Positions 16,675 to 34,535 of a stretch of 64,000 bases of DNA are shown piece by piece. The notes under the pieces were generated by a model, which was not told where the DNA came from, did not search any database, and worked only from the letters and a program-made list of their open reading frames with translations. Each line of letters begins with the position of its first letter. Within the stretch, counting starts at the first letter, position 1. The translations under genes and the position numbers were made by a program. The stretch covers positions 248,001 through 312,000 of IMG/VR virus record IMGVR_UViG_3300020172_001601; one strand, given 5' to 3'.

Positions 16675-17271
16675 CCCAATCCCCTCATGATATTAACACC
16701 AGATGGCATCCTACCAAATCCAGGCAACTTTCCCAGACCAACCCCAGGCTCCGGCAACAAAAGCTCCAAAAACACCCTTTTTTCATGTCGGACGTAAACC
16801 CAATGTGTGAAGGCACTTAGGACACGTTGATGGGAAGTGATGGATTTTAGAGGTAGGAAGGGCCTAGCCAGCCTTTCATTGTGTCCTTTATTCCCCCATA
16901 TCCCCCAGGGAAAAAGTTCCAGAGGCGTATTTGATGAATATTGGAAAGAAAATGTATATCGTTGTGAAGCGATATATGAAAAACAAAAAGAAATGTGTGA
17001 AGGGAAAAGTATCCAAGGGGATCATGATATATTCAGGACCAACTAAGGACACAATAAGGCAACGATATATTTTTCAATATTGAGTTCTAAGGTAACGCTG
17101 CCTTATCTTACCTTTAGTTTTTGTTAGTTGCCCTTGATTGCCTTTTGATTGCCTTCGCTGACTTTGTTGCCTTTTCGTCCTGGATCGCCGCCTTTAGTTG
17201 ACTATTGTTGGCTTTTGGCCATTTAGGTCTATTGTACCCTTGCTTTTAGCCAATGGATGATTGGTGTGCCG

Positions 17272-17308
17272 AAGGGAGCAGTTAGGGGAACCGACTGCTC
17301 CCTTTTTT
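17272..17308 (+). terminator. Intrinsic terminator
   Basis: gggagcagtt...gactgctccc followed by T6. Confidence 0.8.
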
Positions 17309-17535
17309 GTTGCATAACGGGTACAAATGAGGTCAGGTCTATTGTACCCTAGCGGGCTGTTCGTATTTTCGGGTTTGGTTGGAGTCAGCGATGGTCACAT
17401 GCTCATATTGTGGTGGCAAAGGATATGACGTAAAGGACGTGCCGGGGACGAGCAAGCAGTGTCCTGTTTGCAAGGGTTCGGGAGAAGTGAAGCGTTAGGT
17501 CTGGTGTACCCTGGGAGTTGTCGGAAGAAATCGAC

Positions 17536-17565
17536 TTGAACCAAACATGGGTTTGGCTCTCTAGG
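17536..17565 (+). promoter_or_regulatory. Second motif class TTGAACC-N14-CTCTCTNGG (also at 19917, 20581, 24581)
   Basis: Four copies with an identical 14-nt spacing and unrelated spacer sequences. Confidence 0.75.
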
Positions 17566-17583
17566 TGTTTCAGGAGACAATAA

Positions 17584-18681
17584 GTGCTGCAACAAAACCA
17601 ACGCATCTTCTTCGGCCCGAAAGACCCTTGGGGTCATACGGAGCCGAGTGAGGAGCAACGTCGGGAAGCTGTATCCCGGACGAATGTGGCTTCGCCGTTC
17701 GCCAAGTTCATTGGGAACGACAAGGCTATTCGTAAATTGCAAACCGCTGCGTACAAGGCATTGGGTCAGTTCAACCATATGATGCGGGATTTGGCATTTG
17801 CCATTTTTGGCCCGTCATCGGCTGGGAAGACCACCATTGCCCGGTTGTATGCTGAGGTTGTGGAGCTTCCGTTTGTCGAGATCAGCCCGAAGGCGATCAA
17901 GACGGTGGACGATTTGTTCAAGGAAATCAGTCGGGTATTGGCCGAAGCTGGCCTGCCGCTGGTGGAAGTGATTCGTCGTGGTCATTACGTTCTGCCTCCT
18001 GTGGTCATCCTGATTGACGAAGTTCATGCTTTGTCGGATGGGGTTGTGCAGGGGTTGCTGAAGGCAACGGAATACAATGACGCAATGATGGCTACGGAAT
18101 CGGGCAAGACGGTGAACACCCACAATGTAACGTGGATGATTGCCACGACCGATGAAGGGAAGCTATTTGATGCTTTCCGTACTCGGTTCAGCCCGGTGAA
18201 CCTGAAGTATTTGGGCAAGGCCGATGTTGCCAAGATCGTTAAGCTGGCGAACCCAGATTTGAGCGATGATGTGTGCAGCATGGTTGCCCATTACAACAGC
18301 CGTATTCCTCGCAAGGCATTGGAATTCGCCCGGTATATGCGCCTGGTGAAAGATATGTCAGGCGGGACGTGGGAAGAGGTTGCCCGGCAGGTGGCCGAGG
18401 ATGAAGAGATTGACGAGCATGGGATGCACGCCGTCCATCTGAAGATTCTTCGGGCATTGGGTCAGGGGCCGATTGCCCGGAACCGTATTGCATTGGTGGC
18501 TGGGCGTAAGGATGAAGAGGTTGAGAAGTTCATCCTGCCTTGGTTGTTGACTGAGACTGACGATCAGGCCGCTTTGGTGACTGTATCCAGCAAGGGCTAT
18601 ACAATTACTGAGGCTGGGCTTGCTGAGTTGGAACGGCGGGCGATCAACCACAAGGGCGAGAAGGCTCTTGTGGCGGCTTAG
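17584..18681 (+). CDS. ruvB: RuvB-like AAA+ ATPase (Holliday junction branch migration)
   Basis: FIGN, GPSSAGKTT, IDEVH, ATT..G.L...RTRF, PRKA sensor, C-terminal wHTH with GP...E....PWL...KG..IT; order matches RuvB. Confidence 0.85.
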   Translation: MLQQNQRIFFGPKDPWGHTEPSEEQRREAVSRTNVASPFAKFIGNDKAIRKLQTAAYKALGQFNHMMRDLAFAIFGPSSAGKTTIARLYAEVVELPFVEISPKAIKTVDDLFKEISRVLAEAGLPLVEVIRRGHYVLPPVVILIDEVHALSDGVVQGLLKATEYNDAMMATESGKTVNTHNVTWMIATTDEGKLFDAFRTRFSPVNLKYLGKADVAKIVKLANPDLSDDVCSMVAHYNSRIPRKALEFARYMRLVKDMSGGTWEEVARQVAEDEEIDEHGMHAVHLKILRALGQGPIARNRIALVAGRKDEEVEKFILPWLLTETDDQAALVTVSSKGYTITEAGLAELERRAINHKGEKALVAA

Positions 18682-18799
18682 GAAAATATCAACACGCTGC
18701 ATATTGGGCGGTAGTACCTGGGGGACCAGCGAATCATCGGTGTCGAGGCCGACGTGTTGACTTTAGGTCTAGTGTACCCTGGCTGTCGGAGGAACAACA

Positions 18800-19270
18800 A
18801 TGAATACCAGAGTTGAAAAGCTGACGGCCAAGGTTGCTGCGGTGAATCGGGCCAACGAGTATGCGGCACGGTTATATGCTGCACTCGTCGAGAAGTTTGC
18901 CCCATTGGTTGGGCAGAAGATTCTCAAGGTAGATGGCACGCTGCTCGCCAAGTATGAGGGGCTGGTGCCGGTGCTGCCTTGTTCGCCCGATCTGCACGTT
19001 TACCGGCATTCGTCCGACTATTCGTTGGCGTGGACTGTGAAGACCTGCGAGTTCATGCCGCCGCATAGCTGCATGTACCATGAGGTTACGGTTTATGTCG
19101 GCGATCTTCGGGGTGCGACCTTGGAGAAGATGACTGTCCATCCGTTCACGGGTCGCACGGATTATTCTGTGGAAGAGATCACGGCGAAGCGGTTGTCGTA
19201 TGAGTCGGCGAAGCGGGTGGCCGATGAGCTTCGGGGCGAATTGTATCCTTTTGGGGAGGACGACCGATGA
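18800..19270 (+). CDS. Hypothetical cassette protein
   Basis: Motif, then GGAGG RBS. Confidence 0.8.
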   Translation: MNTRVEKLTAKVAAVNRANEYAARLYAALVEKFAPLVGQKILKVDGTLLAKYEGLVPVLPCSPDLHVYRHSSDYSLAWTVKTCEFMPPHSCMYHEVTVYVGDLRGATLEKMTVHPFTGRTDYSVEEITAKRLSYESAKRVADELRGELYPFGEDDR

Positions 19271-19410
19271 AGCGGATCAAGAAGACATATAAGACGCTCA
19301 AGCAGGCCGAGCGTTATCAGAACCGATTGTACAACAAATACAACTCGGTTCAGTTGGTTTCGTTTCCTCGATTCAGTGAGGACGGCGAGTACGTTTGGGA
19401 AGTGGCTTAG
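19267..19410 (+). CDS. Small hypothetical protein (47 aa)
   Basis: GGAGG RBS, ATGA overlap, stop is the motif TAG. Confidence 0.65.
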   Translation: MKRIKKTYKTLKQAERYQNRLYNKYNSVQLVSFPRFSEDGEYVWEVA

Positions 19411-19461
19411 GTCCAGTGTACCCTAGTGGGTGTTCGATTCAAAATCACACAGGAGAGTTCG

Positions 19462-19914
19462 ATGCCTTATGTTCCGAAGCACTTGGAGTTCTTGTCTCAT
19501 TCTGGAACTGCGGACGGCTGGCCCGCTGGGATAACTGAGGTTGGCAAGGAGTTTGCCACCAAGCGGGTTGCTGCTGGCTTGGAGAAGTATGGCCAGTTGA
19601 CGCTGGACACGGCGAAGGGTTGCATTTTCGATCATTACATTGACCGGGAGCCGGTGCCGGAAGAGTTGAAGGGTGTGACGTGGGATTGGTTGTATGGTGT
19701 GACGCATCGGGCGTTGCTGGCGGCATCAGCGCAGCAGGTGTGGGTGGCCGAGAAGTCTTACGTCAAGAAAAAGAAGACGAAGAAGGAATGGCATCCGGTG
19801 GCGGTGAGTCGTGCCGACGTTGAGGCACTGGAGACGGCGGGGACGGTGACGTTGGGTGTGACGGGTGAGCGGGTTCGGGCTTTGGCTGGTGTTCTTGGTC
19901 AACTGGTCAAATAG
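19462..19914 (+). CDS. Hypothetical cassette protein
   Basis: AGGAG RBS. Confidence 0.75.
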   Translation: MPYVPKHLEFLSHSGTADGWPAGITEVGKEFATKRVAAGLEKYGQLTLDTAKGCIFDHYIDREPVPEELKGVTWDWLYGVTHRALLAASAQQVWVAEKSYVKKKKTKKEWHPVAVSRADVEALETAGTVTLGVTGERVRALAGVLGQLVK

Positions 19915-20176
19915 CGTTGAACCAAACAACCTCTCAACTCTCTTGGGTATTGTAAGGGGTTGAGAGTTTACTTCGGATCGGTCAAACAGGGCGGGTGATC
20001 TTCGGACTGCCGCCGAGTTTTGTGAACGAGTAAAACATGCACTGGCCGTAGTTCGTGCGGGAGTGAGTCCCGCTTGGGTCACAGGACCGACCCTAGCAAG
20101 TGGTCCCTGCCAGTAGAACGCCGAACCGGGCAACAACCCATGCAATACACTTCTGGATTTTTTCTCTTCTTTTGTT

Positions 20177-20221
20177 GAAACGTCCGGGAGGCCCAGCACG
20201 TCTGCCTCCCGGACGTTTTTG
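20177..20221 (+). terminator. Intrinsic terminator
   Basis: aaacgtccgggaggc...gcctcccggacgtttt. Confidence 0.85.
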
Positions 20222-20300
20222 TTTGCTCACCAAGGGTACAAATGGGCTGAGGTCTATTGTACCCTAGTCGGCGTCAACGCAACTTTTCAAAGGGAATGAA

Positions 20301-20534
20301 ATGATTCGAGAAGCAAAGTGTATTGGTGTTGAGGGTGACGAAGACGGCGAGTTCAGTGATCTGGTCGGTACTTCGGGCAAGCTGCGGCTTGACGACAAGA
20401 GTACGGACAGTGCCGTGAACTGGTTCAATGGTGGTGGATCGGTCAACTTCACTCGTCGCCGGGTGGCTGAGAAGGATGGCGTGGTGAAGGTATTCACGAA
20501 GTTGGGGAACGTCTTCAAGTTCAGATTGGTTTAG
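20301..20534 (+). CDS. Hypothetical cassette protein
   Basis: Stop is the motif TAG. Confidence 0.7.
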   Translation: MIREAKCIGVEGDEDGEFSDLVGTSGKLRLDDKSTDSAVNWFNGGGSVNFTRRRVAEKDGVVKVFTKLGNVFKFRLV

Positions 20535-20634
20535 GTCCAGTGTACCCTAGCTGGTGTCGGAAAGAAAAAAAGAGATCGCCTTGAACCAAGTGTTTGGTTG
20601 GCTCTCTCGGATAGAACACACAGGAGACTTTACG

Positions 20635-22218
20635 ATGGCTGCGTTTTTGATGATTCAGAACCCCGGTGTTGCTCCCGAAGAGGCTTTCACTCTGTTGGGT
20701 GCTTCAACCAAGCGGGACAGTGAAAACGGTGCGACGATTGGTAAGTTCGGTACGGGGAACAAGCACGGTGTTGCGGTTCTGCTTCGCAACCAGTTGAGTC
20801 CTGTGGTGTTTGCGGGGAATTTGAAGCTGGAGTTCGGGACTCGCCAACAGCCGGTGAATGACGGGATCAAGAATACCGTCTTCAACCGTGTTGTGGTGAA
20901 GTTTGGCGGCAAGGACCGGGCGGGTGTATCACGTTCGGCGACGGAAGACCTTGGCTTCGTTCTGGAGCATGGGTCGGCAGACTGGCTGTCCGTGGATTTG
21001 GCCCTTCGTGAGTTCGTGTCCAACTCTTTGGACCGAGCTATTGAGGAAGGGGAAGTTCAGTTCGTCCATCAGTACATCACGTCCCGGTCCTTGGAGTTTC
21101 AGCAGGCTGCTGCCATCAAGGGATCGTATGAGAATCGGGAGATTGCCGATGCTCTGGCGATCTATCGCAAGACTTCGACGGACTACAAGAACGTCGTGGT
21201 TGAAGTGGTGAATGATGGTCAGGTTCGGGCGAAGGCGGGGCATACTCGCATCTTCATCCCGTTGACTGTGGAAGTGCTGGCCTTCTTCAATGATTTGGGC
21301 AAGTGGTTCCTGCACTTCAGCGAGCCGGAACTGTTGAACAAGACGATTCTGCCGAAGTCGAATCGTAACCTTGGGGATCGTCGGTCGGCTGTGATATATC
21401 GTCGTGGTGTTCGTGTTCGGGAATTCGAGTCATCGGATACGCCGAGCCTGTACGACTACAACTTGGAGAATCTGAAGCTGGACGAATCCCGTCGTGTGGA
21501 CGATTGGTATGTCCAGTATGAAGCGGCGGCGGCTTTTGCTGCTGCTGACGTGGAAACGGTGTCCCGGTTGTGGCAGTCGTTCCTTGACGGTCAGAAGTAT
21601 TGGGAGCATAGCTTCCAGTCCTATGGGCTGGAGACTGGCATCCACAAGGAAGAACAGAAGGCAGTATGGACGAAGGCATTCGAGAGCGTGGCTGGTGAGA
21701 ACGCTGTCGTCTCAACTGAGGAAGGCGGGCAGCAGGCTGCTCGTAAGGGCTTCAAGGTTGTGACTGCACCGCAGGCGTTTGTGCAAGCTGCCGAGAAGCA
21801 TGGGGTTCGCACTCCTGCCAAGGTGTTGTCTGAGGACGAACGGGCTGGCCGGACGATCTTCGATGCAACGCCGGATGCCGAGGCTGCTGTCGAGTTTGCA
21901 TGGTATTTGGTCAACAAGTACGGGGTCACGAATGGCAAGAACAAGCCGGTTGTGAAGACGTTCCGAAAGATCATGGATGCCGGGTCGCAGACGTTGGGGT
22001 TCTACAAGGATGGCGTGGTGTACATCAACCAAGACATTGCAGCGAGTGGTTCGCTGTCTCTTGGGTGGCATTCACTGACTCAGCAATTGCTGGTGACGGC
22101 AATTGAGGAAGTGGCACACCATGTCACGGGAGCTACGGACAACAGCCGGGACTTCCAAGACTTCCTGTTGAATCTGGTGGTCTACATGGCGAAGGAACTG
22201 TCAGGTGTGACGTTCTAA
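20635..22218 (+). CDS. GHKL (HATPase-like) ATPase with C-terminal zincin-like segment
   Basis: GASTK...IGKFGTG and ALREFVSNSLD; C-terminal EEVAHH; AGGAG RBS before ATG 20635. Confidence 0.75.
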   Translation: MAAFLMIQNPGVAPEEAFTLLGASTKRDSENGATIGKFGTGNKHGVAVLLRNQLSPVVFAGNLKLEFGTRQQPVNDGIKNTVFNRVVVKFGGKDRAGVSRSATEDLGFVLEHGSADWLSVDLALREFVSNSLDRAIEEGEVQFVHQYITSRSLEFQQAAAIKGSYENREIADALAIYRKTSTDYKNVVVEVVNDGQVRAKAGHTRIFIPLTVEVLAFFNDLGKWFLHFSEPELLNKTILPKSNRNLGDRRSAVIYRRGVRVREFESSDTPSLYDYNLENLKLDESRRVDDWYVQYEAAAAFAAADVETVSRLWQSFLDGQKYWEHSFQSYGLETGIHKEEQKAVWTKAFESVAGENAVVSTEEGGQQAARKGFKVVTAPQAFVQAAEKHGVRTPAKVLSEDERAGRTIFDATPDAEAAVEFAWYLVNKYGVTNGKNKPVVKTFRKIMDAGSQTLGFYKDGVVYINQDIAASGSLSLGWHSLTQQLLVTAIEEVAHHVTGATDNSRDFQDFLLNLVVYMAKELSGVTF

Positions 22219-22319
22219 CATCAATTGAGCCTGTGTGTGACGGACGGGGGACTGCCAACCCCGTCCGTTTTTTTGTTTATTGCGGTAGGTCTATTGTACC
22301 CTGGGTGGTGGAGGGACAA

Positions 22320-22577
22320 ATGAGAAAACGAATCGTGTTGAATGGTCGGAACGAATACGATGGAAGTCCATCGCATTACTGTTTTGATTTCGATGTCAAG
22401 TTCAATCGGCATGGCAACATTGAAGTGATTGTTGACAAAACGTCATCTTCGTTTGTTTCCTTTTTCCGTGCTGGCAAGTACGTCTTCACTCGGTCGGGCT
22501 TTTGCATTTCGCATCCTGCATCGGAGCGATATCGCTATCACAAGGTCAATGCCGAACTGGTTGAGAGTCACACATAG
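22320..22577 (+). CDS. Hypothetical cassette protein
   Basis: GGAGG RBS; stop is the motif TAG. Confidence 0.7.
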   Translation: MRKRIVLNGRNEYDGSPSHYCFDFDVKFNRHGNIEVIVDKTSSSFVSFFRAGKYVFTRSGFCISHPASERYRYHKVNAELVESHT

Positions 22578-22608
22578 GTACAGTGTACCCTAGTGGGTGG
22601 AGGATAAC

Positions 22609-22812
22609 ATGAAATATGAAAAGTGGATAAGAGATCATCTTTGTGATGTTCATTTTCAGAGCAATGGTTCTACGGGTGGTTGGACTGTTAAGACTTGGGT
22701 TGGCTTTGTGAATGGCTTTATTACAACGGAACATTTTGGTTCTTTGCCGCCTGTGATGGACGAAGTGGTTGAATCTATTCTTAGGAAGGTTGGAAGCAAT
22801 GACGAACGATGA
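22609..22812 (+). CDS. Hypothetical cassette protein
   Basis: GGAGG RBS. Confidence 0.65.
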   Translation: MKYEKWIRDHLCDVHFQSNGSTGGWTVKTWVGFVNGFITTEHFGSLPPVMDEVVESILRKVGSNDER

Positions 22813-23020
22813 ATTTGAAGAGTTGCAGTCTGAAGCTGGCGACTTGGAAGGTCAGTTGGACGAAGCGAAGGATCACTTGAGTAGTGTCACGAGTTGCGAA
22901 ACGCAATCGGACTTCAAGGCGAACCTTACTGAGCTACGGCAAACTCTGACTGTGCTATTGGCTGAAACCACTGATTTGTGGCAGCGTGCTGGTGGTCGTC
23001 CTGTTCGGAAAGCCAAATAG
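22799..23020 (+). CDS. Small coiled-coil protein
   Basis: Stop is the motif TAG. Confidence 0.65.
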   Translation: MTNDEFEELQSEAGDLEGQLDEAKDHLSSVTSCETQSDFKANLTELRQTLTVLLAETTDLWQRAGGRPVRKAK

Positions 23021-23044
23021 GTCCAGTGTACCCTAGAGGGCATC

Positions 23045-23374
23045 ATGCAAAAAACAATTGAAGGACTACAAGCGAAGCTGGACGAGCAGAAGCAACTGCT
23101 TCGCACCCTTGCGATGTGGGGCAAGGTTCAAGAGCAGGGCATCAATCCTGACGATGTTAAGTCGTTCGGGTTTGATCCTGCCTTGATGACTGCCCAAGAA
23201 CGCAACGAGGCACGCCGGGCGAATCGGTTGAACTACACAACCAACAATCCCTATGGCTGGCCGATCAGTCGGAATGAGGAAGGGCAGGCCAGGATTATTG
23301 GACTGAAGCACAACTTCGTCCGGTTGCACTCTGGCGAAAAGGTGAAGTTATCCCCAATGGTGGATCGGCCTTAG
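23045..23374 (+). CDS. Hypothetical cassette protein (near-leaderless)
   Basis: ATG 3 nt after predicted +1; stop is the motif TAG. Confidence 0.75.
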   Translation: MQKTIEGLQAKLDEQKQLLRTLAMWGKVQEQGINPDDVKSFGFDPALMTAQERNEARRANRLNYTTNNPYGWPISRNEEGQARIIGLKHNFVRLHSGEKVKLSPMVDRP

Positions 23375-23425
23375 CTCCAGTGTACCCTAGTGGGTGTTAC
23401 TTCAACAATTCACGGAGACTATGCG

Positions 23426-24040
23426 ATGAAGATTGGTGATACGGTCAAGGTGTTGTCTCGGAAGGCACTTCCTCCGGGGCAGGATGTGTGGCAACGGGGC
23501 AAGGTATTGAGTGTGCGGGACATTGATCCTCCGGTCAGTACCACGGTGTATAACATCGGTTTCGGCGAGTTCTCTTCTTATGAAGAACGGGAATTCGAGC
23601 GTCACGAGATCAAGTCGTATCAGGAACAATCTGATGCCGACTACAACGCCAACATCGAACGGGACATACCGATTGGTCTTGCCTTGGCGAATGAGGCATT
23701 GGCCGAGTTGCTGCCGGGTGAAGTGGTGGTGTTCAAGGATGCCGATGGCGAGTTGTCGGCATACCACGGTGGGGTGACGATCAGTCCAACGCAATACGAT
23801 CAACCGAAGATTGGTGGTTTGATTGAGCGGACGGGGTGGGAAGTCACGACATGGGATGTGCAACCTTCGACCCGGTGGCATCCTGAAGAGTACATTGATT
23901 CGCCTGTTGGGACGTTCCCGACGATTCAACGAGCGGTTCAGGCGTTGATCGAGACGATTTTCAAGTTGAAGGCGAAGGACTATTGGACTGCCAAGGCAGA
24001 TGCAGCGCAGGCCGAGGCATGGGCAGCGGGAGAGATGTAG
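23426..24040 (+). CDS. Hypothetical cassette protein
   Basis: GGAG RBS. Confidence 0.75.
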   Translation: MKIGDTVKVLSRKALPPGQDVWQRGKVLSVRDIDPPVSTTVYNIGFGEFSSYEEREFERHEIKSYQEQSDADYNANIERDIPIGLALANEALAELLPGEVVVFKDADGELSAYHGGVTISPTQYDQPKIGGLIERTGWEVTTWDVQPSTRWHPEEYIDSPVGTFPTIQRAVQALIETIFKLKAKDYWTAKADAAQAEAWAAGEM

Positions 24041-24255
24041 TGAAGAAGTTGACGGTATCGGTTGAGGACGCACAGCGGTTATTGTCCTCAACCGATTTTG
24101 CATATTTGTCAACATGGCATCGGGAGGAATTGGCCAAAGCATTGGCAGACCTTCCTCAACCGCCGCTTGTTGGCATTGGCATAACGGAAGATGATCGCAA
24201 GCTGACGATGTTGGACCATGCTTTCGCCGAGATTGGCAGACGGCGAACAAGGTAG
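24040..24255 (+). CDS. Hypothetical protein
   Basis: TAG/GTG coupling; stop is the motif TAG. Confidence 0.6.
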   Translation: MKKLTVSVEDAQRLLSSTDFAYLSTWHREELAKALADLPQPPLVGIGITEDDRKLTMLDHAFAEIGRRRTR

Positions 24256-24308
24256 GTCCAGTGTACCCTAGTGGGTGTTCCAACAACGAAACCTTTCTGG
24301 AGGATGCG

Positions 24309-24578
24309 ATGGCAGACAAGTTTGTTCAAGTGATTCGTAGTGATGGGGAGCCTGGGCCTTTGTATGGTCCTTACGACTACAACGAGGCCGAGAAGGTATT
24401 GCTTGCAGTATTGCAAAGCAACAAGACGGACAACGGCCCGGTGGAGATCACGGACGAAGTTACTTCTACCATTTCGACGGATGGATGTTGGTCCTTCGAT
24501 GGTGGTGGCGGGGTGTACATTGTCGAGAGTGAAGAGTTCACTCCCGACGAAGAAATTGATGAAGAAATTGACGAGTAG
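24309..24578 (+). CDS. Acidic hypothetical protein
   Basis: GGAGG RBS; D/E-rich tail. Confidence 0.7.
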   Translation: MADKFVQVIRSDGEPGPLYGPYDYNEAEKVLLAVLQSNKTDNGPVEITDEVTSTISTDGCWSFDGGGGVYIVESEEFTPDEEIDEEIDE

Positions 24579-24646
24579 CATTGAACCTAATCGTCAGGTT
24601 GCTCTCTAGGTGTTTGTGAAACCTTCCTTTCTTTGGAGACAGAAGC

Positions 24647-24841
24647 ATGTGGGACTTGGATACCATTGTTCGGATCAATCAGAAGGCTGCGGCTCAGGCC
24701 AGCAAGGGTTTGCCGGAGCGGGACGCCTTGTTCTTGGCGACTCAGACTCGTGACTCCAGCAAGCCGAATCTGAAGGACGAAGGCGAGATCATCAAGCTGC
24801 CTTCGCCGAAGCCGGTGGCTTGTGCATGTTGTGTTGGCTAA
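24647..24841 (+). CDS. Hypothetical protein
   Basis: Follows the TTGAACC-N14 motif; GGAG RBS. Confidence 0.65.
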   Translation: MWDLDTIVRINQKAAAQASKGLPERDALFLATQTRDSSKPNLKDEGEIIKLPSPKPVACACCVG

Positions 24842-24913
24842 CTTCTCCCCGTGGGCGTGGCACGATCTGTGCCACGTCTCACCCTGCGTTATCAACAGGG
24901 GAGAGGAAACAAC

Positions 24914-25306
24914 ATGAGAAGCCGAGAATTGGGAAAGATTGCGGTCGATGCTGGAGACATTGTTTGTTTCAGCATGGACAGCGTGATGCGTTTGGCTGAG
25001 AAGCTGGGCGTGTCTGAGGATACGTTAATCAAGCGATACAACGGTGTGGAATGCGGGTTTGGTGCCGATGGAAACTACGGCGTTGACTCCATGACTGCCG
25101 TTGATGTCGATGGCAAGACGTATTCGGTGGTGATGATTGGTGGTGAACCGGATAAGTTTTTACGCTTTCTTGGCGAGACTGATCCGACGTTCACTTCATT
25201 TTATCACGGTCATCCTCGCTATGCCGAAGTCGGCAAGGGCGAGCAGTTCAACCGGGAACTGTTTGACAGTATTGCAGCGGAGTACCGGGCGAAGTTGCTT
25301 GGATAG
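24914..25306 (+). CDS. Hypothetical protein
   Basis: GAGG RBS; stop is the motif TAG. Confidence 0.7.
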   Translation: MRSRELGKIAVDAGDIVCFSMDSVMRLAEKLGVSEDTLIKRYNGVECGFGADGNYGVDSMTAVDVDGKTYSVVMIGGEPDKFLRFLGETDPTFTSFYHGHPRYAEVGKGEQFNRELFDSIAAEYRAKLLG

Positions 25307-25355
25307 GTCCAGTGTACCCTACGGGGTGTGACACTGATTACACCTTTTACGGAGA

Positions 25356-25736
25356 ATGGACATGAAAGCCGAGTTACCAACGATCAGCAGCTATGGCAAC
25401 TACAGTTCAAGCAACTATGGTGCGCATACCCTGCGGGTTGACCTGGGACCACTGACTGTGTGGTTCAGCTACAAGACGCCAGTTGCCTTCCGAGCGCCGG
25501 GGACGCCGACGATTGTTCGCAAGAACGATTGGGGTGCCACGACGGGCAAGCACCTGAAGTGGATCGACGGTGAGACGAGCAAGACTGCCAAGAACCGGGT
25601 GGACGGTGAGCAGTTCGAGCAGTTGTGGGCGCAGCACGTCGAACCGTTGTTTGAGGATAAGCCCGCACCGGAGCCGGGCATCTTTGCTGGCATCGGCAAT
25701 CTTTTGAATGTGGAACATCCGAAGGACGGCATCTAG
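25356..25736 (+). CDS. Conserved phage hypothetical protein (FSYxTPVA...TTGKH family)
   Basis: Motif pattern recalled from phage early proteins. Confidence 0.7.
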   Translation: MDMKAELPTISSYGNYSSSNYGAHTLRVDLGPLTVWFSYKTPVAFRAPGTPTIVRKNDWGATTGKHLKWIDGETSKTAKNRVDGEQFEQLWAQHVEPLFEDKPAPEPGIFAGIGNLLNVEHPKDGI

Positions 25737-25924
25737 TGGTCGAGGACAAAACAGATTGGTGTGGACGGCACAAGGACAGATTTGGAAAGTCCGTCTACAT
25801 TGATCTGACTCTCAGTCACGATGGAACTTGGTCCTATTTCTATGATGGGAATAGGATCAAGAGTGGCATTCATGGCAAGAAGAATGCGATGGCAGAATTG
25901 CTTGCTTACATAAAGAGCATTTAG
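25736..25924 (+). CDS. Hypothetical protein
   Basis: Coupled start; stop is the motif TAG. Confidence 0.55.
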   Translation: MVEDKTDWCGRHKDRFGKSVYIDLTLSHDGTWSYFYDGNRIKSGIHGKKNAMAELLAYIKSI

Positions 25925-25979
25925 GTCCAGTGTACCCTAGTGGGTGTGACAGCCCACTGGACTTTGCGAGGAAGTGACC

Positions 25980-26411
25980 ATGACTGAACACTATTTGCGT
26001 TTCTTGGAAAACGAAGATGAAGCACAGATGACTGGCTACAAGTTTTCTGTGCAGGGCGACCGGGTGATTATCAGTCAGACGTTCCATCACTCGGAATACG
26101 AGACTGATCGTCCCAAGAACTATTCCAAGCCAGAAGCCCGGAAGTTTTGGGCGAGCCTTATTGCTTCGGGGAAGTTCGAGGAAGTTCGCCCTTCGCTTTC
26201 TCAGGTGTTGGCGAATGCCAAGTCCAATCATGGTTTCTTGACGATGAATGATTTGCGAGTCATCGCCAAGGAAGATCGGCTCAAGATGATTCTGGTCCGA
26301 ATGGGCAACAGCCGATTTTTGGCCCATGCCCAGGATGTGAAGTGGCTGGTTGATATTGTTCAGCGGGACGGCAAGGATTATGTCCGGGACATATCATTGC
26401 CAGCCAAGTAA
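25980..26411 (+). CDS. Hypothetical cassette protein
   Basis: GAGG RBS. Confidence 0.75.
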   Translation: MTEHYLRFLENEDEAQMTGYKFSVQGDRVIISQTFHHSEYETDRPKNYSKPEARKFWASLIASGKFEEVRPSLSQVLANAKSNHGFLTMNDLRVIAKEDRLKMILVRMGNSRFLAHAQDVKWLVDIVQRDGKDYVRDISLPAK

Positions 26412-26521
26412 ACCGTCTTCTTCCGAACGGGCGTCGGAAGCCGTGTTCACCGAGCGGGCGTCGGTGTTTTAGGTCCAGTGTACCCTGGTGGTTGTAACAA
26501 CAACCTTTTGCGAGAGAACAA

Positions 26522-27076
26522 ATGACAAAGCAATACAGAGAACGCTACGGCACGCATTGGGACATTCGCACCCCGCTGGAAGTGATAGCGGTGCTTGAGA
26601 CGGCCCGGCAGAACCGCACTCGACTGCATATCAGCTTGGGTTATACCGAGCATGATGCGGTTGAATGGGAAAACTCATTGGGCGACGAGAAGAAGGCGGT
26701 CGGCCTTGACTGGCTCGAAGAGTATATGAGCTATGGCTACATTGGCCGCAGCACGGGAAGTGTGAAGATACCCCTGTTGGTTCACAATGAGCGGAGCTAT
26801 GGTGGCGGGGCGTTGCTGGACCATTGTATTGTCCGCATTCGCACGAGTCGTGGCGGGCGTGTGCTGTGGCAGCATCCGAACTATCATCACGGCAAGATCA
26901 CGATTCACCGCAAGCCGATCCCTCTGGAATATCCGGGTGGCGTGTTGACGGTGGACGTTCGCCGGAATGGGCAGGAGCAGGCAGCGTTTAAGGACATGGC
27001 ATCGGCCCGGCGTTACGTCAACAAGCTGGGATTGAAGGCCGAGATTGTAAACGCTCTGGAAGCGGCCTTGGCTTAG
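26522..27076 (+). CDS. Conserved phage hypothetical protein (GYIGRSTG..KIPL...GG family)
   Basis: Recognisable motif; stop is the motif TAG. Confidence 0.75.
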   Translation: MTKQYRERYGTHWDIRTPLEVIAVLETARQNRTRLHISLGYTEHDAVEWENSLGDEKKAVGLDWLEEYMSYGYIGRSTGSVKIPLLVHNERSYGGGALLDHCIVRIRTSRGGRVLWQHPNYHHGKITIHRKPIPLEYPGGVLTVDVRRNGQEQAAFKDMASARRYVNKLGLKAEIVNALEAALA

Positions 27077-27127
27077 GTCCAGTGTACCCTAGTGGGTGTA
27101 ACCAACAACAACACACGGAGAGATACG

Positions 27128-27331
27128 ATGGACGCTGATTTCAAAGTTTCGGTTCAAGGCAGCATTTGGTTGTTCGAGCCGGTCACTGAGACTGCGAAGA
27201 ACTTCACCGGCACTGACCTTGACGTTCAGGGTTGGCAGTGGATGGGCAAAGCCTTCGGGGTGGATGCCCGGATTGCCAATGCCTTGGTGAGTTCTCTGGA
27301 AGACGAGGGCTTCGTTTTGGAAATCACATAA
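27128..27331 (+). CDS. Hypothetical cassette protein
   Basis: GGAG RBS. Confidence 0.7.
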   Translation: MDADFKVSVQGSIWLFEPVTETAKNFTGTDLDVQGWQWMGKAFGVDARIANALVSSLEDEGFVLEIT

Positions 27332-27355
27332 GGGGATCGCTTCCTCTTGTGTGGC

Positions 27356-27502
27356 ACGGCGGTACTTTAATGGCAGAAGGCGGCTCCAAGCAAGGTTCGA
27401 GTCCTTCTTAGGCTGGAGTTCTGGAGAGTTAGCTACTCTTTGGACCTCCCCCTTTGCATGGAGTACGGGGCGGCAGTGCGGGTTCGACTCCCGCTCGCTG
27501 TG
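27356..27502 (+). ncRNA. tRNA-like RNA with expanded anticodon domain
   Basis: Acceptor ACGGCGG/TCGCTGT, D-arm CTTT-AATGGCA-GAAG, T-arm GCGGG-TTCGACT-CCCGC; ~95-nt structured middle region. Confidence 0.7.
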
Positions 27503-27561
27503 TTTTTAGGTCTGGTGTACCCTAGTGGGTGTTACGAAACTTTCCTTTTGGAGAACGAACT

Positions 27562-28056
27562 ATGTTGAAGGAAGCCTGTCGCAAGGGCATGAAGGTTTAC
27601 TTCGGTCGGTCGAATGGCGAGAAGACCTTGGGTGAGGTTGTGAAGCTGAATCCGACGAAGGCCAAAGTGCGAACCCTGGAACAACGGGGCAATGGTCGTG
27701 GGTCGGCTATTGGCACGGAATGGGGCGTTCCCTATTCGATGCTGACGCCAGCCGAAGGTGAAACGGTGGGCATTGTTGTTCCGATTCAACGGGAGCATCT
27801 GACCTACAACCCGTTCACCTACATCGAGAATCTGATTCTCGAAGCCATCCTGTCCTGTTACAGCGGCCTGTCGCCGGAGAACCTGTCGGCTGATGGTGAG
27901 GCGAGCATCACGCATATTCGGACGACTCGTGCCAGACTGGAACGGCAGCTTCGGGGACTGCAAGCGGCCTATGGTCGGCAGGTAGACGAAGCCGAAGTGT
28001 ACGGTTGGGCAGGCAGCAAGTCGGCCTACGAACTGGCCCGCAAAAAGCAGGCATAA
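27562..28056 (+). CDS. Hypothetical cassette protein (SH3/KOW-like N-terminus)
   Basis: GGAG RBS; followed by a terminator at 28074-28105. Confidence 0.75.
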   Translation: MLKEACRKGMKVYFGRSNGEKTLGEVVKLNPTKAKVRTLEQRGNGRGSAIGTEWGVPYSMLTPAEGETVGIVVPIQREHLTYNPFTYIENLILEAILSCYSGLSPENLSADGEASITHIRTTRARLERQLRGLQAAYGRQVDEAEVYGWAGSKSAYELARKKQA

Positions 28057-28155
28057 GTTTGTGAAGGGCAGCGAAAGGCAGGGGTATATCCCCTGCCTTT
28101 TTTTGTGTCCATATTGTTTAGGTCTATTGTACCCTAGAGGGTGGAGGATAAGAAA

Positions 28156-28365
28156 ATGAAAAAGAATCCAACTGCGAGTGAACTGGTTGATCGACGAAAC
28201 TTGAACAATTACAAGCGATGGCTTCGAGGGCAATCTGCCCGTCTCGAAGGCAAGCCATGTGCTGAGAATCATGGGGTTTATTTGGACGGGTTTTATTCAC
28301 CCGATGCAATCATCCCGGATTTCTTGACTCACGACGAAGCGGCCCGGCTGCGAAGGCAGATGTAG
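28156..28365 (+). CDS. Hypothetical cassette protein
   Basis: Stop is the motif TAG. Confidence 0.7.
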   Translation: MKKNPTASELVDRRNLNNYKRWLRGQSARLEGKPCAENHGVYLDGFYSPDAIIPDFLTHDEAARLRRQM

Positions 28366-28408
28366 GTCCAGTGTACCCTAGTGGGTGTCACCTAACGGGA
28401 GAAGTCGA

Positions 28409-28579
28409 ATGTGGTATGTGATCCAAGATGACGATGGACCATTCCTGACGAATGAAACGCCTGCGGAAACAGATGTGATTCTGTTCCAAGGCACTATTGT
28501 CGAGGCCGAACGAGCCTTGCAGCGTGCTTGTGAAGATTGGGAATCCGAACACGACGACATGAACGAGGACTTTCAATGA
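28409..28579 (+). CDS. Small acidic protein
   Basis: GGAG RBS. Confidence 0.6.
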   Translation: MWYVIQDDDGPFLTNETPAETDVILFQGTIVEAERALQRACEDWESEHDDMNEDFQ

Positions 28580-28983
28580 TTTTTGTAAGCGTCACAAAGA
28601 ATGACGGCCAAGCCGTTGTTTCGATCAACGCTGCTCAGGAAAGGAAGTATTTTCCTTTGACGAAGCGGGGTTGTATTGCTGCGGGTAAGTGGCTGGCTGA
28701 GATCGGAGCGGATAGTTGGAGCAATAGTTCCAGCGTTGACTTCCCGAAAGAAGTCAAGCCTCGCTTCCGGCACAATGTTTCAGACCTGATGACTGAGGGC
28801 TTTCGGTCGGTGCCGCCTGTGGTCCAAGAGACTGTGGTTGGCGACTACGAAATTCGTGGCAATCAATACGTTGCGATTGCCATCAACGTCAAGAACCCGA
28901 AGGACTCTCATTACTTCGACCCCGATGTGAACAACAACGCCTTTATTCGAGCCTGTGGTTGGGCTTATGAACCGGAGGACTAA
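28576..28983 (+). CDS. Hypothetical protein
   Basis: GAGG RBS; ATGA overlap. Confidence 0.7.
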   Translation: MIFVSVTKNDGQAVVSINAAQERKYFPLTKRGCIAAGKWLAEIGADSWSNSSSVDFPKEVKPRFRHNVSDLMTEGFRSVPPVVQETVVGDYEIRGNQYVAIAINVKNPKDSHYFDPDVNNNAFIRACGWAYEPED

Positions 28984-29235
28984 ATGTCTTTTCCAAAAGA
29001 CGGGACAGTGTTAAATGGGGCATTCTGGCTAAATGGGGAATCATGGCTAATCATGGAACCCCAAAAGCCACTGAATGAATATCTTGCACAATCATTGCAG
29101 GAGCAGCGGCAATACATTGAACGCCTGACCAAAAGGGCAGACGCACTGGAACAATGGCTGGCTAGGTCCAGTGTACCCTCAAGGGCAAGGAGAACAAAAC
29201 ATGGCAAGTCCTTGGAACGTGGTGGAACTGGTTGA
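28984..29235 (+). CDS. Hypothetical protein reading through the motif (RSSVP)
   Basis: GGAGG RBS. Confidence 0.55.
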   Translation: MSFPKDGTVLNGAFWLNGESWLIMEPQKPLNEYLAQSLQEQRQYIERLTKRADALEQWLARSSVPSRARRTKHGKSLERGGTG

Positions 29236-29638
29236 GAAGCCGAAAGGCAGTGTTGGCATGAGTCTGGCTGAGGCCGACAAGTTGCTGCGAACTGCGGGAT
29301 ATTTGCAAGGTGATTGGGACTATTTGAAGGACTATCACTTTGCGAAGTACGTTTACTTCGACATCAACACAGTGGAAGACGTGGAAGCCTTCCTTGTGAA
29401 GCTGGACAAGGACAACGAAGACCATACGAAACCTGGGCCATTCCGATGGGGCTGCTCGAAGGCGAAGGGCATTCGGTCCTATTTGAAGAATGAAACATGG
29501 AAGAAGGACGAAACTTGGCTAAGGGCAGCAATATCCCACAATCGTCGCATCATTTGTTCCTGCCATGAGGGTGGGTCATATAAGCGACGGGATGAACTGC
29601 CGATTGGTCATCAAGAGAGGCCGTGGGGGATGAAGTAG
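29201..29638 (+). CDS. Hypothetical cassette protein
   Basis: AGGAG RBS; stop is the motif TAG. Confidence 0.75.
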   Translation: MASPWNVVELVEKPKGSVGMSLAEADKLLRTAGYLQGDWDYLKDYHFAKYVYFDINTVEDVEAFLVKLDKDNEDHTKPGPFRWGCSKAKGIRSYLKNETWKKDETWLRAAISHNRRIICSCHEGGSYKRRDELPIGHQERPWGMK

Positions 29639-29690
29639 GTCCAGTGTACCCTAGCTGGTGTTGAGAGAACGAACTCGAACTGGAGAAATC

Positions 29691-30401
29691 ATGAAAGAAC
29701 TCGAAGCTGCGTTGAACGAAGAGTTGGCGAAGGTGCTGGGTGCAAAGCACAACTGGATGGGCGTGATTGCCGGGGTTGCCGGTCGCCGAGCCAGTGAGTT
29801 TGCCCGGACGAAGAACGGTTTGCTGGAAGACGTTGTGACCGACGTGACTGGCGACATCATTCTTCAGGCGAAGGAAGGCAAGCTGGCGGGTGCGGTGATT
29901 CGTGCCAAGGAAGCATCCCATACGGATGAAGAACTGGTGGAGAACTTACGGCACGTCGTCATGAAGGCGGCGTTCTACCGGGTGAGTGATGCCATGAAGT
30001 GGCGCTATCGCAGCGGCACTCAGTTCAGCCAGATCAGTGCTGAGAATGACTTCTCCGAGACTGTGGAAGCTCGCCCGGAAACCGAAACCGACTTGACCTA
30101 TTACACGGACCTGTTGGTGAATGAGTTGGAAGTGATGGCGACTGCTGCCGACTGGAAGCACAATCGCACCGGGAACCCCAGCTATCCGAAGCAGGCGAAG
30201 CGGTTACGGAAGTCCAAGGAAATGGTGCCGGATCGGGTCGAGGGGATGGCGTTGAAGGATTTGATGGAGAAGTACAGCGTCGGCAGCAAGGGCGGGATGC
30301 AACAGCATCTTGACGACATTGGGCAGGCACTTGCCCGTGTTGCCGGTCGGCTGGGTGATCCTACCTTGGTTCGAGGGACCAAGGGGATCGAGGTTGCTTA
30401 G
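29691..30401 (+). CDS. Divergent ECF-type sigma factor-like protein
   Basis: Region-2-like EDVVTDV...LRHVVMKAAFYRVSDAMKWRYR; region-4-like EGMALKDLMEKYSVGSKGGMQQHL; 236 aa. Confidence 0.5.
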   Translation: MKELEAALNEELAKVLGAKHNWMGVIAGVAGRRASEFARTKNGLLEDVVTDVTGDIILQAKEGKLAGAVIRAKEASHTDEELVENLRHVVMKAAFYRVSDAMKWRYRSGTQFSQISAENDFSETVEARPETETDLTYYTDLLVNELEVMATAADWKHNRTGNPSYPKQAKRLRKSKEMVPDRVEGMALKDLMEKYSVGSKGGMQQHLDDIGQALARVAGRLGDPTLVRGTKGIEVA

Positions 30402-30455
30402 GTCCAGTGTACCCTAGTGGGTGTAACAACCCACTAGACTTTGCGAGGGAATCAA

Positions 30456-30740
30456 ATGCCAAAAGGTCAATTGCCAAAAGATCAAATTGTATATCAGGTC
30501 GTCACTAAAGGTGGCGGCGTTGATGGTCGGGACCATACTGACAAGGGCGGCAACATCAAGTTCGCATCCTTTGATCGTGCCGAAGCTGAGAAGCAAGTCA
30601 CGGCATGGGATGACCTGAAGTTGGTTGCCATGAGTGGCAAAGAATTGCTGGCCCTTAAAAAGAAGGTCTTGGCAAAGTTGGACGGTGTTGAAAAGCTGGT
30701 GCTTGAGTTGCCCGCAACGGTGCGGACGAACAATTGGTAG
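30456..30740 (+). CDS. Hypothetical cassette protein
   Basis: Stop is the motif TAG. Confidence 0.7.
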   Translation: MPKGQLPKDQIVYQVVTKGGGVDGRDHTDKGGNIKFASFDRAEAEKQVTAWDDLKLVAMSGKELLALKKKVLAKLDGVEKLVLELPATVRTNNW

Positions 30741-30796
30741 GTCCAGTGTACCCTAGTGGGTGTAACAGCCCACTGGACTTTGCGAGGAAGTGAACC

Positions 30797-31123
30797 ATGC
30801 GATTGAGATATGACTATTCAACAAAGATGTGCCGTGACCGATTCGCAAGGATCGAGAAACTCGGCAAGATCAAGTTGGTGCGGGGCTATCGCTACTTTGG
30901 CCGGTACAACACGAGCCATGAAGCGGTGCTAGTTGTCGGAGAGAACGGCACTGCACGCTTCGGCGGGTTGTTGTGGGGTTATGGTGGCGAAGGTCCACGG
31001 GGATTGCAGGAACTATTGTTGAAGCTGAATGTGCCAGCGGCACAAGCTGAAGCGATTGCTTTCTCAACACCCCGGAAGGATGAGATCGGCGAAGACTGGC
31101 GGCTGGTGCTGCCGGTCAACTAG
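30797..31123 (+). CDS. Hypothetical protein (WGYGGEGP motif)
   Basis: GAGG RBS; stop is the motif TAG. Confidence 0.75.
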   Translation: MRLRYDYSTKMCRDRFARIEKLGKIKLVRGYRYFGRYNTSHEAVLVVGENGTARFGGLLWGYGGEGPRGLQELLLKLNVPAAQAEAIAFSTPRKDEIGEDWRLVLPVN

Positions 31124-31185
31124 GTCCAGTGTACCCTAGTGGGTGTGCTGGTGAGTGTTTCAAAACCCTGTTTCGGAGAGATCGA

Positions 31186-31452
31186 ATGAGCAAGTCAAGT
31201 GCAGTTGTGGTTGTTGGTCGTGGCCGTCCTGAGCAGTACAGCGCCGGATTCATCCGTGCCTTCAAGGTGATCGTGCGGAAGCACGGTTTGCTGGCGGGTC
31301 GGGAGTTCATCAACGCCAACGGCGTGACGGTCGGCGGGAAGCATCGGGACGTGAGCATCAGCTTGCCGACCCTGAGCAAGTACGTCAAACGTGATGAAGT
31401 CGGTGGCAAGGCCGTGCCTCTCTTCCGTGGTCGTCCTACGAAGGCAGCGTAA
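31186..31452 (+). CDS. Small basic protein with two GRP motifs (possible DNA binding)
   Basis: GGAG RBS; RGRP twice. Confidence 0.65.
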   Translation: MSKSSAVVVVGRGRPEQYSAGFIRAFKVIVRKHGLLAGREFINANGVTVGGKHRDVSISLPTLSKYVKRDEVGGKAVPLFRGRPTKAA

Positions 31453-31607
31453 CCTTCGGGTATGCGGGGCAGGGAATGGTCCCTGCCCTATAGGGTGCTT
31501 GGCCTAGCCGAGCAATAGCAATACCCAAATGAGAATCACTGGGCGGCGTTTAGGTCTAATGTACCCTAGAGGGTGTTGAACACAACATCCTTGAATGCGA
31601 GGAAATC

Positions 31608-32432
31608 ATGAGTGGATTTGCAGTCGGAACGTATGTTGGCCCGGCTGGTGTTCGTCGGCTGTCTTATGAGGACGGGCTGGCGAAGCTGAAGGGAAAAGAC
31701 CAGAAGAAGTTGGAAAACAACACCTATCTGGTGAAGGTGGATGACAAGACGCTGGGCGTGAAACTTCACAATACCATCGTCGTCTACATCTTCAAGAGCG
31801 GGGTGTACCAACTGGACACGGGCGGTTGGCGTACCGTGACCTCAAAGGACCGCATCAACCGATATGGTCCAGCGACGGTGCATCAGAAGAACAACATTTG
31901 GTACATCGGTGACGGCATCTATGAGGATGGCGTCCGGGTCAATGCTGAAGGCAAGGTGTTGACGCCGCAACGTGGGGTCAAGGTGGTCGAAGCGAAGAAA
32001 CGCAAGCTGGACCGCATGGTGTTGAAATACATCAAGGGGTTCGGGGAGCATGTGATTCGCAACGGGTTGCAAGTGGATAAAGCTGACAAGCCCACCGAGC
32101 AATCGCCGTGGAAGGTCGTGGAGTTAGTTGAAGGCCCCAAGCCTATTGCTCCGGGGCCGGGAGACTGTTGGGCGTGTTACTTCGGTATCACGTCAGACGA
32201 TCCCCTGAAAGAGCCACTAGGGGTCGAGCATCTGCTTGAGCATATGCTCGAAGCATACTTCGTCCCCAGCTTACTCTGGAAGGCGATTGTGGCGAATGGG
32301 TATCAAAACCCCGGCTTCATCTGGCATAGCATTGCCAGCGATGCCCGGCGTGGCGAAAGCCGGTTCCTAAGTCGTGTCCTGACTGCCTACTTCCGAAAGC
32401 GGAAACCGGCACTGTTGGACTTGATGGAATAA
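31608..32432 (+). CDS. Conserved phage hypothetical protein (LDTGGW.TVT.K.RIN family)
   Basis: Recognisable N-terminal domain; GAGG RBS. Confidence 0.75.
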   Translation: MSGFAVGTYVGPAGVRRLSYEDGLAKLKGKDQKKLENNTYLVKVDDKTLGVKLHNTIVVYIFKSGVYQLDTGGWRTVTSKDRINRYGPATVHQKNNIWYIGDGIYEDGVRVNAEGKVLTPQRGVKVVEAKKRKLDRMVLKYIKGFGEHVIRNGLQVDKADKPTEQSPWKVVELVEGPKPIAPGPGDCWACYFGITSDDPLKEPLGVEHLLEHMLEAYFVPSLLWKAIVANGYQNPGFIWHSIASDARRGESRFLSRVLTAYFRKRKPALLDLME

Positions 32433-32506
32433 AAAACAGGAACCCGCCATGAACTGAATCATGTGCGGGTTCTCTTGATTTACAACTTGTGAAAGGCTGG
32501 TGGACA

Positions 32507-32806
32507 ATGAACGCTGTTGGATTGAAGAACTTTACTGAACAGGTGATAAACTCGCCTGAACCCGTGCTGGTTGACTTCTGGGCAAGTTACTGCGCTCCAT
32601 GCCGGGCGTTAAAGCCGATCCTGAATGAAGTGTCAGCGACGGGGGCCAAGGTTGTGACGGTGGACATAACCGAGGAACCTGAACTGACTGCCCACTACGG
32701 CATCACTGCAATTCCTACGTTGGTCGTCTTCAAGGGCGGGCAACCGGGCCAGCGGGTTGTCGGGGTGAAGAAGAAGGACGAACTTCTGCAACTCATCAGT
32801 GCCTAA
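32507..32806 (+). CDS. trxA: Thioredoxin
   Basis: VLVDFWASYCAPC; YGITAIPTLVVFKGG. Confidence 0.9.
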   Translation: MNAVGLKNFTEQVINSPEPVLVDFWASYCAPCRALKPILNEVSATGAKVVTVDITEEPELTAHYGITAIPTLVVFKGGQPGQRVVGVKKKDELLQLISA

Positions 32807-32888
32807 ACCGTGTGCCGCCTTCGGGCGGCAACACCTTGCGAAGTCTAGTGTACCCTACGGGGTGTTCCAAGAAAGAAGAGGAGCTACT

Positions 32889-33494: not shown

Positions 33495-33550
33495 CTCCAG
33501 TGTACCCTATGGGGTGTGAAGACAATATTGCACCCCATAGGGAGATGATG

Positions 33551-34514: not shown

Positions 34515-34535
34515 GTCCAGTGTACCCTATTGGGT

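Follow-up and report, generated by a model that had tools for sequence, protein, structure and literature searches.

The window analysed here, 64,000 nucleotides (nt) long, spans bases 248001-312000 of the IMG/VR virus record IMGVR_UViG_3300020172_001601, which measures 340,341 bp and has a CheckV completeness of 69%. At 17584..18681 it carries a gene for a RuvB-like AAA+ ATPase of 365 residues. The gene starts with GTG, 8 nt downstream of the Shine-Dalgarno sequence AGGAG (17571..17575, read from the sequence), and its start position is the same in the homologues. It lies near the upstream end of an array (17224..45012) in which 60 same-strand copies of a promoter-like motif, similar in arrangement to the PeSL (promoter-early stem-loop) repeats of T4-like phages, are spread at about one per small gene over some 55 open reading frames (ORFs). 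All genes and motif copies given below by window coordinates are on the plus strand. A megablast comparison of the region 17000-21000 with cultured-phage records gave no match.

A preliminary description of this DNA, made from the letters alone, had called the product a full-length RuvB-like protein with a winged helix-turn-helix. This is correct, because four lines of evidence agree on it. The NCBIfam RuvB models TIGR00635 and NF000868 match the protein from residue 31 to residue 351, over model positions 16-326 of 330 (E 1e-20). The 14 best PDB sequence matches are all RuvB. An AlphaFold2 (AF2) model built on 28 homologues (pLDDT 91) shows the three-domain RuvB architecture, with large and small AAA+ subdomains and a winged-helix head composed of three helices (283-322) and a beta-hairpin (332-341). 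Finally, when this model was compared with the PDB by Foldseek, ranks 1-44 were taken by RuvB chains over the full length, with E-values from 1e-19 to 1e-12 and TM values of 0.7-0.8 by target. Judged by its sequence, nevertheless, the protein is not a RuvB orthologue. The two NCBIfam scores, 73.5 and 69.3 bits, lie below the equivalog cut-offs of 282 and 299. In Pfam the protein matches the generic AAA family, reaches RuvB_N just at its cut-off (27.1 vs 27 bits) and gives E 0.06 for RuvB_C. Members of the phage family share 19-27% identity with bacterial RuvB, whereas the three bacterial RuvBs that we used share 48-58% among themselves.

The best PHROG match carries a different label, namely 'clamp loader' (phrog_5846, E 7.6e-15), and clamp-loader subunits also form the next-best fold class. 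According to this label, the protein would be a DNA polymerase clamp loader. However, the PHROG match is limited to the AAA+ core (residues 39-248) while the RuvB models span the full length, and clamp-loader subunits enter the Foldseek list only from E 1e-10, so that the RuvB fold E-values are better by a factor of at least about 1e2, and of about 1e9 at the top. At its C-terminus the protein carries a winged helix rather than a collar, and family searches of the 340-kb record found no beta-clamp (DNA_pol3_beta). The likeness to clamp-loader and RFC subunits is thus that of a related AAA+ core with a weaker match in both fold and sequence. We rejected the label, and a clamp-loader function is scarcely credible.

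We aligned 12 diverse family members with the RuvB proteins of E. coli, a Streptococcus and a Wolbachia, and mapped the residue roles in the RuvAB motor after Wald et al. 2022 (PMC9477746). The Walker A lysine and threonine, the Walker B aspartate and glutamate, E128, the sensor-1 threonine, the arginine finger and sensor 2 are invariant throughout this alignment. In the window protein, Walker A is G76-T84 (GPSSAGKTT, 17809..17835) and Walker B is D145-E146 (18016..18021). The arginine finger R201 (18184..18186) aligns with RuvB R171, and the sensor-2 arginine R243 (18310..18312) aligns with RuvB R218 (roles from PMC9477746). Around these motifs the protein differs from RuvB. In RuvB, helix alpha3 and the pre-sensor-1 hairpin make up the hydrophobic surface on which RuvA domain III docks (PMC9477746). 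The phage family has a specific insertion of about 16-20 residues after alpha3 (residues 122-137, 17947..17994) that is not found in bacterial RuvB. Its pre-sensor-1 beta-hairpin (residues ~164-181, 18073..18126) has a conserved TESG tip and is five residues shorter than that of RuvB, with strands (168-170 and 176-178 in the AF2 model) that are polar. A counterpart of the RuvA-binding hairpin to which the preliminary description had drawn attention is present, in a changed form and beside an insertion. The winged-helix head domain (residues 277-352, 18412..18639) contains five inserted residues (TETDD), and its DNA-contact arginines are replaced. In the numbering of S. thermophilus RuvB, the R291 column holds D, E, I, K, V or A in family members, while R310 has become V or S and R315 has become Y, L or F in all 12 of them. 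R312 is replaced in 11 of the 12, which carries little weight since two of the three bacterial RuvBs have P there too. Near the replaced arginines, the RuvB-like protein has only K309 and K337. The alignment also shows that the family lacks the RuvB cis arginine R21 and D129. Going by these comparisons, the catalytic engine is intact, and the two surfaces that give RuvB its role, one docking the partner and one holding DNA, are rebuilt.

The same evidence bears on the possibility that the protein is a working RuvB, which would use RuvA and RuvC of the host to migrate and resolve Holliday junctions in recombination-dependent replication, or which would poison host RuvAB. Both sequence and fold clearly point to RuvB as the closest family, all ATPase motifs and the pre-sensor-1 hairpin are present, and RuvA-RuvB pairs can function across species (PMC9477746). 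Such a role is hard to reconcile with the short, polar hairpin and the insertion of about 20 residues after alpha3, which forms the other half of the docking surface (PMC9477746), or with the loss of the head-domain DNA arginines and of R21. A score of 73 against 282 bits, far under the equivalog cut-off, and the strong conservation of the family across phages of 27%-58% GC also speak against it, and we consider it unlikely. A complex prediction with residues 145-203 of E. coli RuvA (domain III) scored 0.00, which, being obtained without controls, is evidence neither way. A conserved N-terminal motif, Q-x4-F-F/W-G, was considered as a clamp-binding PIP box, and this idea was dropped because the spacing does not fit the PIP-box consensus.

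The preliminary description had noted that the window holds neither ruvA nor ruvC, and this holds for the whole 340-kb record: RuvA was not found at E-values up to 1, and no RuvC was found above the cut-off (best E 0.06). Family searches of the record also found no RusA and no RecA, and there was one sub-threshold match of the endonuclease VII/HNH type. A RuvB_N family scan of the record flagged one other AAA+ protein, a ClpX-like one; a gene at genome 148835-150262 codes for a zinc-finger-bearing AAA+ protein of the ClpX type. In the 595-kb relative LR756511, whose family member shares 48% identity, neither RuvA nor RuvC was found. A 2021 survey of 224 jumbo phages described RuvC-type resolvases without a RuvB-like ATPase (PMC7824862). 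The present clade of huge phages displays the reverse of that pattern: a RuvB-like ATPase is kept, with no RuvA, RuvC, RusA or RecA found in this record and no RuvA or RuvC in LR756511. The suggestion of a repurposed AAA+ motor, made in the preliminary description, fits this lack of a detected partner together with the intact catalytic motifs and the remodelled RuvA-docking and DNA-contact sites.

For the family as a whole, a word search yielded more than 500 clusters at 60-94% identity, all of them metagenomic, and IMG/VR contributed 20 loci at 44-90% identity on contigs of up to 572 kb. Between 73 and 100% of the Atlas neighbours of the protein are viral, and BFVD holds no close named viral match. 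Among 185,579 prokaryote species, each represented by one genome, a single family match was found, on a 48-kb contig of a metagenome-assembled genome that carries its own array. This contig (L037, JAYVUD010000138.1), binned as Chloracidobacterium sp., has 12 copies of another motif, CCGGTCTACCATCG, and looks as if it came from a phage of the present kind. Probably drawn into the bin as a phage contig, it offers at best a weak hint of the host. A tree built from 20 family members plus the three bacterial RuvBs places the phage proteins in a clade of their own (support 100/100), separated from RuvB by a very long branch. The family is strongly kept across phages whose GC content ranges from 27% to 58%. 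Such a range implies very different hosts, and the conservation therefore argues for a target that is internal to the phage or universal. Virus-specific and conserved, the gene thus belongs to the core set of a clade of huge phages, and it represents a remodelled RuvB-like family.

We then consider the array in which the gene is found. The motif core, TGTACCCT, has 60 plus-strand copies at 17233-45012 and three on the minus strand, against 1.3 expected. A relaxed scan of the genome gave a single loose match outside the array block, and no other long over-represented motif was found in the genome. The full element measures about 30 nt and reads TAGGTC-YAK-TGTACCCTAG-N-GGGTGTAAC. It has two variants: in TAGGTCTATTGTACCCT, CTAT precedes the core and the element comes after hairpin and T-run terminators (at least 9 copies, family D9), whereas in TAGGTCCAGTGTACCCT, CCAG precedes the core and the element abuts stop codons or coding sequence. 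The two promoter classes of the preliminary description can be recognised in these terminator-linked and coding-abutting variants, if the elements are indeed promoters, as their anatomy suggests. Every copy is placed at a gene boundary, and in about 30 of the 60 the first TAG of the motif is the stop codon of the upstream ORF. A start codon with a Shine-Dalgarno sequence mostly follows 35-42 nt past the core, or 17-21 nt past it where the Shine-Dalgarno sequence takes the place of the 3' part of the element. The repeats are direct and strand-specific, keep a set spacing to the start codons and are in many cases joined to terminators; they therefore look like promoter-like signals rather than attC-like or other recombination sites. 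We read the motif copies as putative promoters that serve one gene each, or at least as expression signals of single genes.

As for the polymerase that would read them, sigma-70 consensus promoters are not enriched (2 vs 4.1 expected). Split into TG and a following TAnnnT, the core would, on our own reading of the letters, resemble a -10 element. The genome contains four sigma-like ORFs with sigma-70 region 2, at genome 48055, 62531, 156410 and 197135-198142. A family search for T7-type RNA polymerase returned nothing, and is uninformative since its control matched nowhere. The motif is probably read by the host RNA polymerase with one of the four sigma-like proteins of the phage.

The array block also stands out by its content. 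Among the 54 other array ORFs, Pfam matches are limited to two thioredoxins, one KaiB-like protein and one DUF; few Pfam matches are typical of early host-takeover regions. Dense small genes of one direction, mostly of no assigned function and served by repeated strong promoters, are likewise seen in the host-takeover module of SPO1 and the pre-early region of T5, and to our knowledge no RuvB-like gene has been described in either. The GC content of the block (17000-45000, genome 265-293 kb) is 52-53.5%, compared with ~47% elsewhere in the genome, and the block also has the strongest positive GC skew of the genome. Rfam gave no match in the window. Three motif copies, at 17318-17350, 20233-20265 and 36440-36472, have an inverted partial copy just 5' (GGGTACAAAT ... 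ATTGTACCC), and these pairs may form an operator or a bidirectional element.

Three motif cores (17233, 17343 and 17505) precede the RuvB-like gene. The first two copies, 17224-17240 and 17334-17350, are of the terminator-type variant. Between them lies a perfect 11-bp hairpin (17272-17304) with a T-run (to 17310). This hairpin begins about 35 nt after the first motif and has no Rfam match, and the unit of motif and hairpin could give a very short transcript, such as a small RNA or an attenuator. The true first ORF of the array, with 35 codons (17391..17498) and its own motif copy, follows the second copy. Its product has two CxxCxGxG motifs and resembles a DnaJ-type zinc finger (DUF5351, E 2e-5; DnaJ_CXXCXGXG, E 5e-4), and it was not found in any fetched relative. 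The motif copy of the RuvB-like gene itself (TAGGTCTGGTGTACCCTGG..., 17496..17524) contains in its TAG the stop codon of this ORF, and the next copy (18764..18795), directly 3' of the gene, heads an ORF of 156 codons. The gene had previously been described as the first of the array. It is the first sizeable one, but is preceded by the zinc-finger ORF and a short terminated unit.

The other well-conserved array gene, at 20554/20635-22218, encodes a protein of 527/554 residues and is kept in the relatives L003, L008 and L009. This protein has an ExxxNxxD-like N-box (LREFVSNSLDRA), which makes a GHKL ATPase a motif-level lead only. It has no Pfam match, a PDB profile search found nothing, and its AF2 model is poor (pLDDT 45, four sequences). 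A 40-nt leader element is common to the RuvB-like gene (17525-17565) and this gene (20570-20610). As an RNA structure the leader was discarded, since it folds no better than shuffled sequences (z -0.2 and +0.3).

The position of the RuvB-like gene recurs in relatives. Seven other array-bearing relatives have a visible upstream side. In five of these seven the gene is first or second in the array, and in all seven motif copies stand just upstream of it, even where the motif sequence has changed. The positional link that the preliminary description had named as the test of its idea therefore holds. Besides the window, the loci with the gene in first or second place are L007, L009, L012, L013 and L037. 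It is first in L007, L010 and L011, with motifs AATTGTACCTACAGG and TTAATTGTATTTTT, and second in L012 and L014 (ATTGTACCCTA), in L009 (TTCCGAACC) and in L037. In L013 it is first, with four copies of ATTGTACYGA just 5' of it; this contig ends soon after the gene, and any downstream array would lie outside the view. By contrast, the gene is about the seventh in L003 (28 copies of AATGTACCCTAATGGGTGTGA), after a DUF932 gene, and lies in mid-array in L017 (AAGCAAAGCCGATA). In L008, whose family member is 90% identical, 18 motif copies begin right after the gene, and the upstream sequence available is only 346 nt. Across the 20 loci, 12 have a motif containing TGTA or TGTAC within about 80 nt 5' of the gene (about 120 nt in L013).

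A larger gene at the head of a long, one-direction array of small ORFs split by a repeated element resembles an integron, and the preliminary description had placed the gene where an integron carries its integrase, suggesting that it promotes branch migration between the short repeats. The protein would then organise recombination at the repeats. The recurrence of the head position is in keeping with this, as are breakpoints seen between the window and L008. These two arrays are collinear at 67-83% nucleotide identity, with the RuvB-like gene (83.4%) and the 527-residue gene (83.1%) best conserved and their neighbours at 67-80%. In this one genome pair, L008 has an extra cassette of 586 nt flanked on both sides by a motif copy, at a place where the window has a single copy, and a partial duplication starting 3 nt away from a motif. 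The repeats thus act as recombination points, although local alignments tend to stop at conserved motifs anyway. The comparison with an integron does not carry further, however. The head gene encodes an AAA+ ATPase, and the repeats are direct, promoter-like elements of about 30 nt located upstream of the ORFs, rather than imperfect palindromes of the attC kind. Each ORF has its own signal, instead of a single Pc promoter. The ORFs scanned yielded no recognisable site-specific recombinase, tyrosine recombinases included, but five adjacent minus-strand ORFs among them lack any Pfam match, and no direct search for integrase families was made. In T4-like phages, breakpoints at promoter-terminator repeats are ascribed to homologous recombination mediated by PeSLs, and no dedicated array enzyme is described (PMC2839356, PMC4122927). 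The view of the repeats as points of exchange hence deserves partial credit from the breakpoints, while nothing ties the ATPase to this exchange, and we consider a recombination organiser highly improbable.

The PeSLs of the T4-like hyperplastic regions are the closer parallel in layout, because there too terminator-plus-promoter repeats flank many small ORFs of one direction (PMC2839356, PMC4122927), and close relatives differ by indels and duplications whose breakpoints coincide with the repeats. The present motif differs in being unrelated in sequence to T4 early promoters. Moreover, most of its copies lack a terminator and overlap the upstream stop codon instead, all 60 are packed into one 28-kb block, and the signal is probably read via a phage sigma rather than the main sigma of the host.

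The more distant relatives suggest a possible link to transcription. Eight loci at 44-52% identity form one clade (support 95/99) with few motif copies, and in them the RuvB-like gene comes after, and in most directly after, a sigma-70-family gene encoding 315-337 residues, whose product has a PDB profile match to SigA (4e-8). In L006, L020 and L027, the three in which copies could be placed, the sigma gene and the RuvB-like gene each have a local copy of the same motif. ArdC-like genes occur nearby downstream in five of the eight loci, and macro-domain genes in four. One may therefore picture an accessory motor of transcription, working with a phage sigma and the host RNA polymerase in opening, recycling or tracking on DNA. 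T4 late transcription, which needs a clamp and a clamp loader, is a loose comparison. Apart from the gene order, this picture draws on the promoter-like motif kept at 12 of the 20 loci and on the four sigma-like ORFs. On the other hand, the orthologous sigma gene in the window genome (197135-198142) is 68 kb away from the RuvB-like gene, and neighbourhood alone is weak evidence, as both genes may simply be early. This makes a transcription motor distinctly unlikely. The sigma orthologue is preceded by a ParB_N-like gene.

Upstream of the array, a divergent junction (16675..17223) separates it from a block of leftward genes. The junction has a local GC-skew minimum, short repeats and a GC trough of 35.5% at 16900-17099, with a tandem TTGATTGCCTT at 17134-17155. 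In the wider divergent region we noted a 13-nt tandem repeat (AGCTATCTCCACA) at 15515-15629 and five copies of AATGTGTGAAGG at 15681-17003. These repeats may be regulatory or origin-like sites. An AAA+ module joined to a winged helix next to an AT-rich junction with direct and inverted repeats would also suit a replication initiator or loader of the Orc1/Cdc6 or DnaA type acting on that junction. Nevertheless, the fold matches favour RuvB above any initiator, and the skew minimum is not the genome-wide one: the cumulative minimum is local, and a 20-kb run of genes on the opposite strand accounts for it. With no genome-wide support, the junction was rejected as a replication origin, and an initiator role for the protein is very unlikely.

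Taking these results together, we favour, at a probability of roughly 60%, an AAA+ ring that is made early, acts independently of RuvA and spends ATP on moving along, or remodelling, DNA or nucleoprotein as infection becomes established. Like RuvB, from which it derives, the virus-specific ATPase most likely forms a ring through an arginine finger acting in trans, and it appears to work without RuvA or RuvC. We infer that the block of about 55 small, mostly unassigned genes, each with its own phage-specific, promoter-like motif, is an early region for host takeover or anti-defence. Within it the ATPase would be the single conserved core enzyme, produced as the early programme begins or soon after. 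Its likely job would be to translocate or remodel DNA or nucleoprotein at the expense of ATP. We are much surer of the protein's identity and regulatory setting than of its substrate: the sequence data show the fold, the motifs, the lack of recognisable partners in the DNA available, what the array motif is like and how it is distributed, the conservation of the family and the synteny, and from these we deduce ring assembly, early timing, promoter function and substrate. Several observations pull against this interpretation. The three DNA-contact arginines of the RuvB head domain are replaced throughout the family, which leaves room for a substrate other than DNA or for another way of gripping DNA. 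Promoter function and early timing rest on anatomy and analogy. The loci with the gene at the head of the array are related, and thus these lineages, sharing ancestry, do not represent independent events. No partner gene was found to be conserved across the whole family. One could also be encoded in what is missing from the record, whose completeness is 69%.

A more specific version of the RuvA-independent ring would be a motor of early establishment, encoded in the position transcribed first, that loads on the entering genome and pulls in the rest of its 300-600 kb or sweeps host proteins off it, or an ATP-driven cofactor of the sigma encoded next to it in the deeper subclade. We hold this to be decidedly improbable; if true, either role would put the RuvB scaffold to a new use. 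In any case, the family provides a clean case for asking what else that scaffold can do. It also opens an approach to the first events of infection by huge phages and to the phage-specific promoter system that would drive some 55 genes of no known function.

Two further observations concern the surroundings of the gene in relatives. In the 299-kb relative L003, genes for Cas3, Cas_GSU0053 and GSU0054 and a CRISPR array (repeats at 5392-5794) occupy L003:1-5800, immediately 5' of the promoter array. In L021, a MoxR/CbbQ-type AAA+ gene (15402-16478) lies 4 kb downstream of the RuvB-like gene, and groups with the RuvB-like family only via the common AAA+ core.

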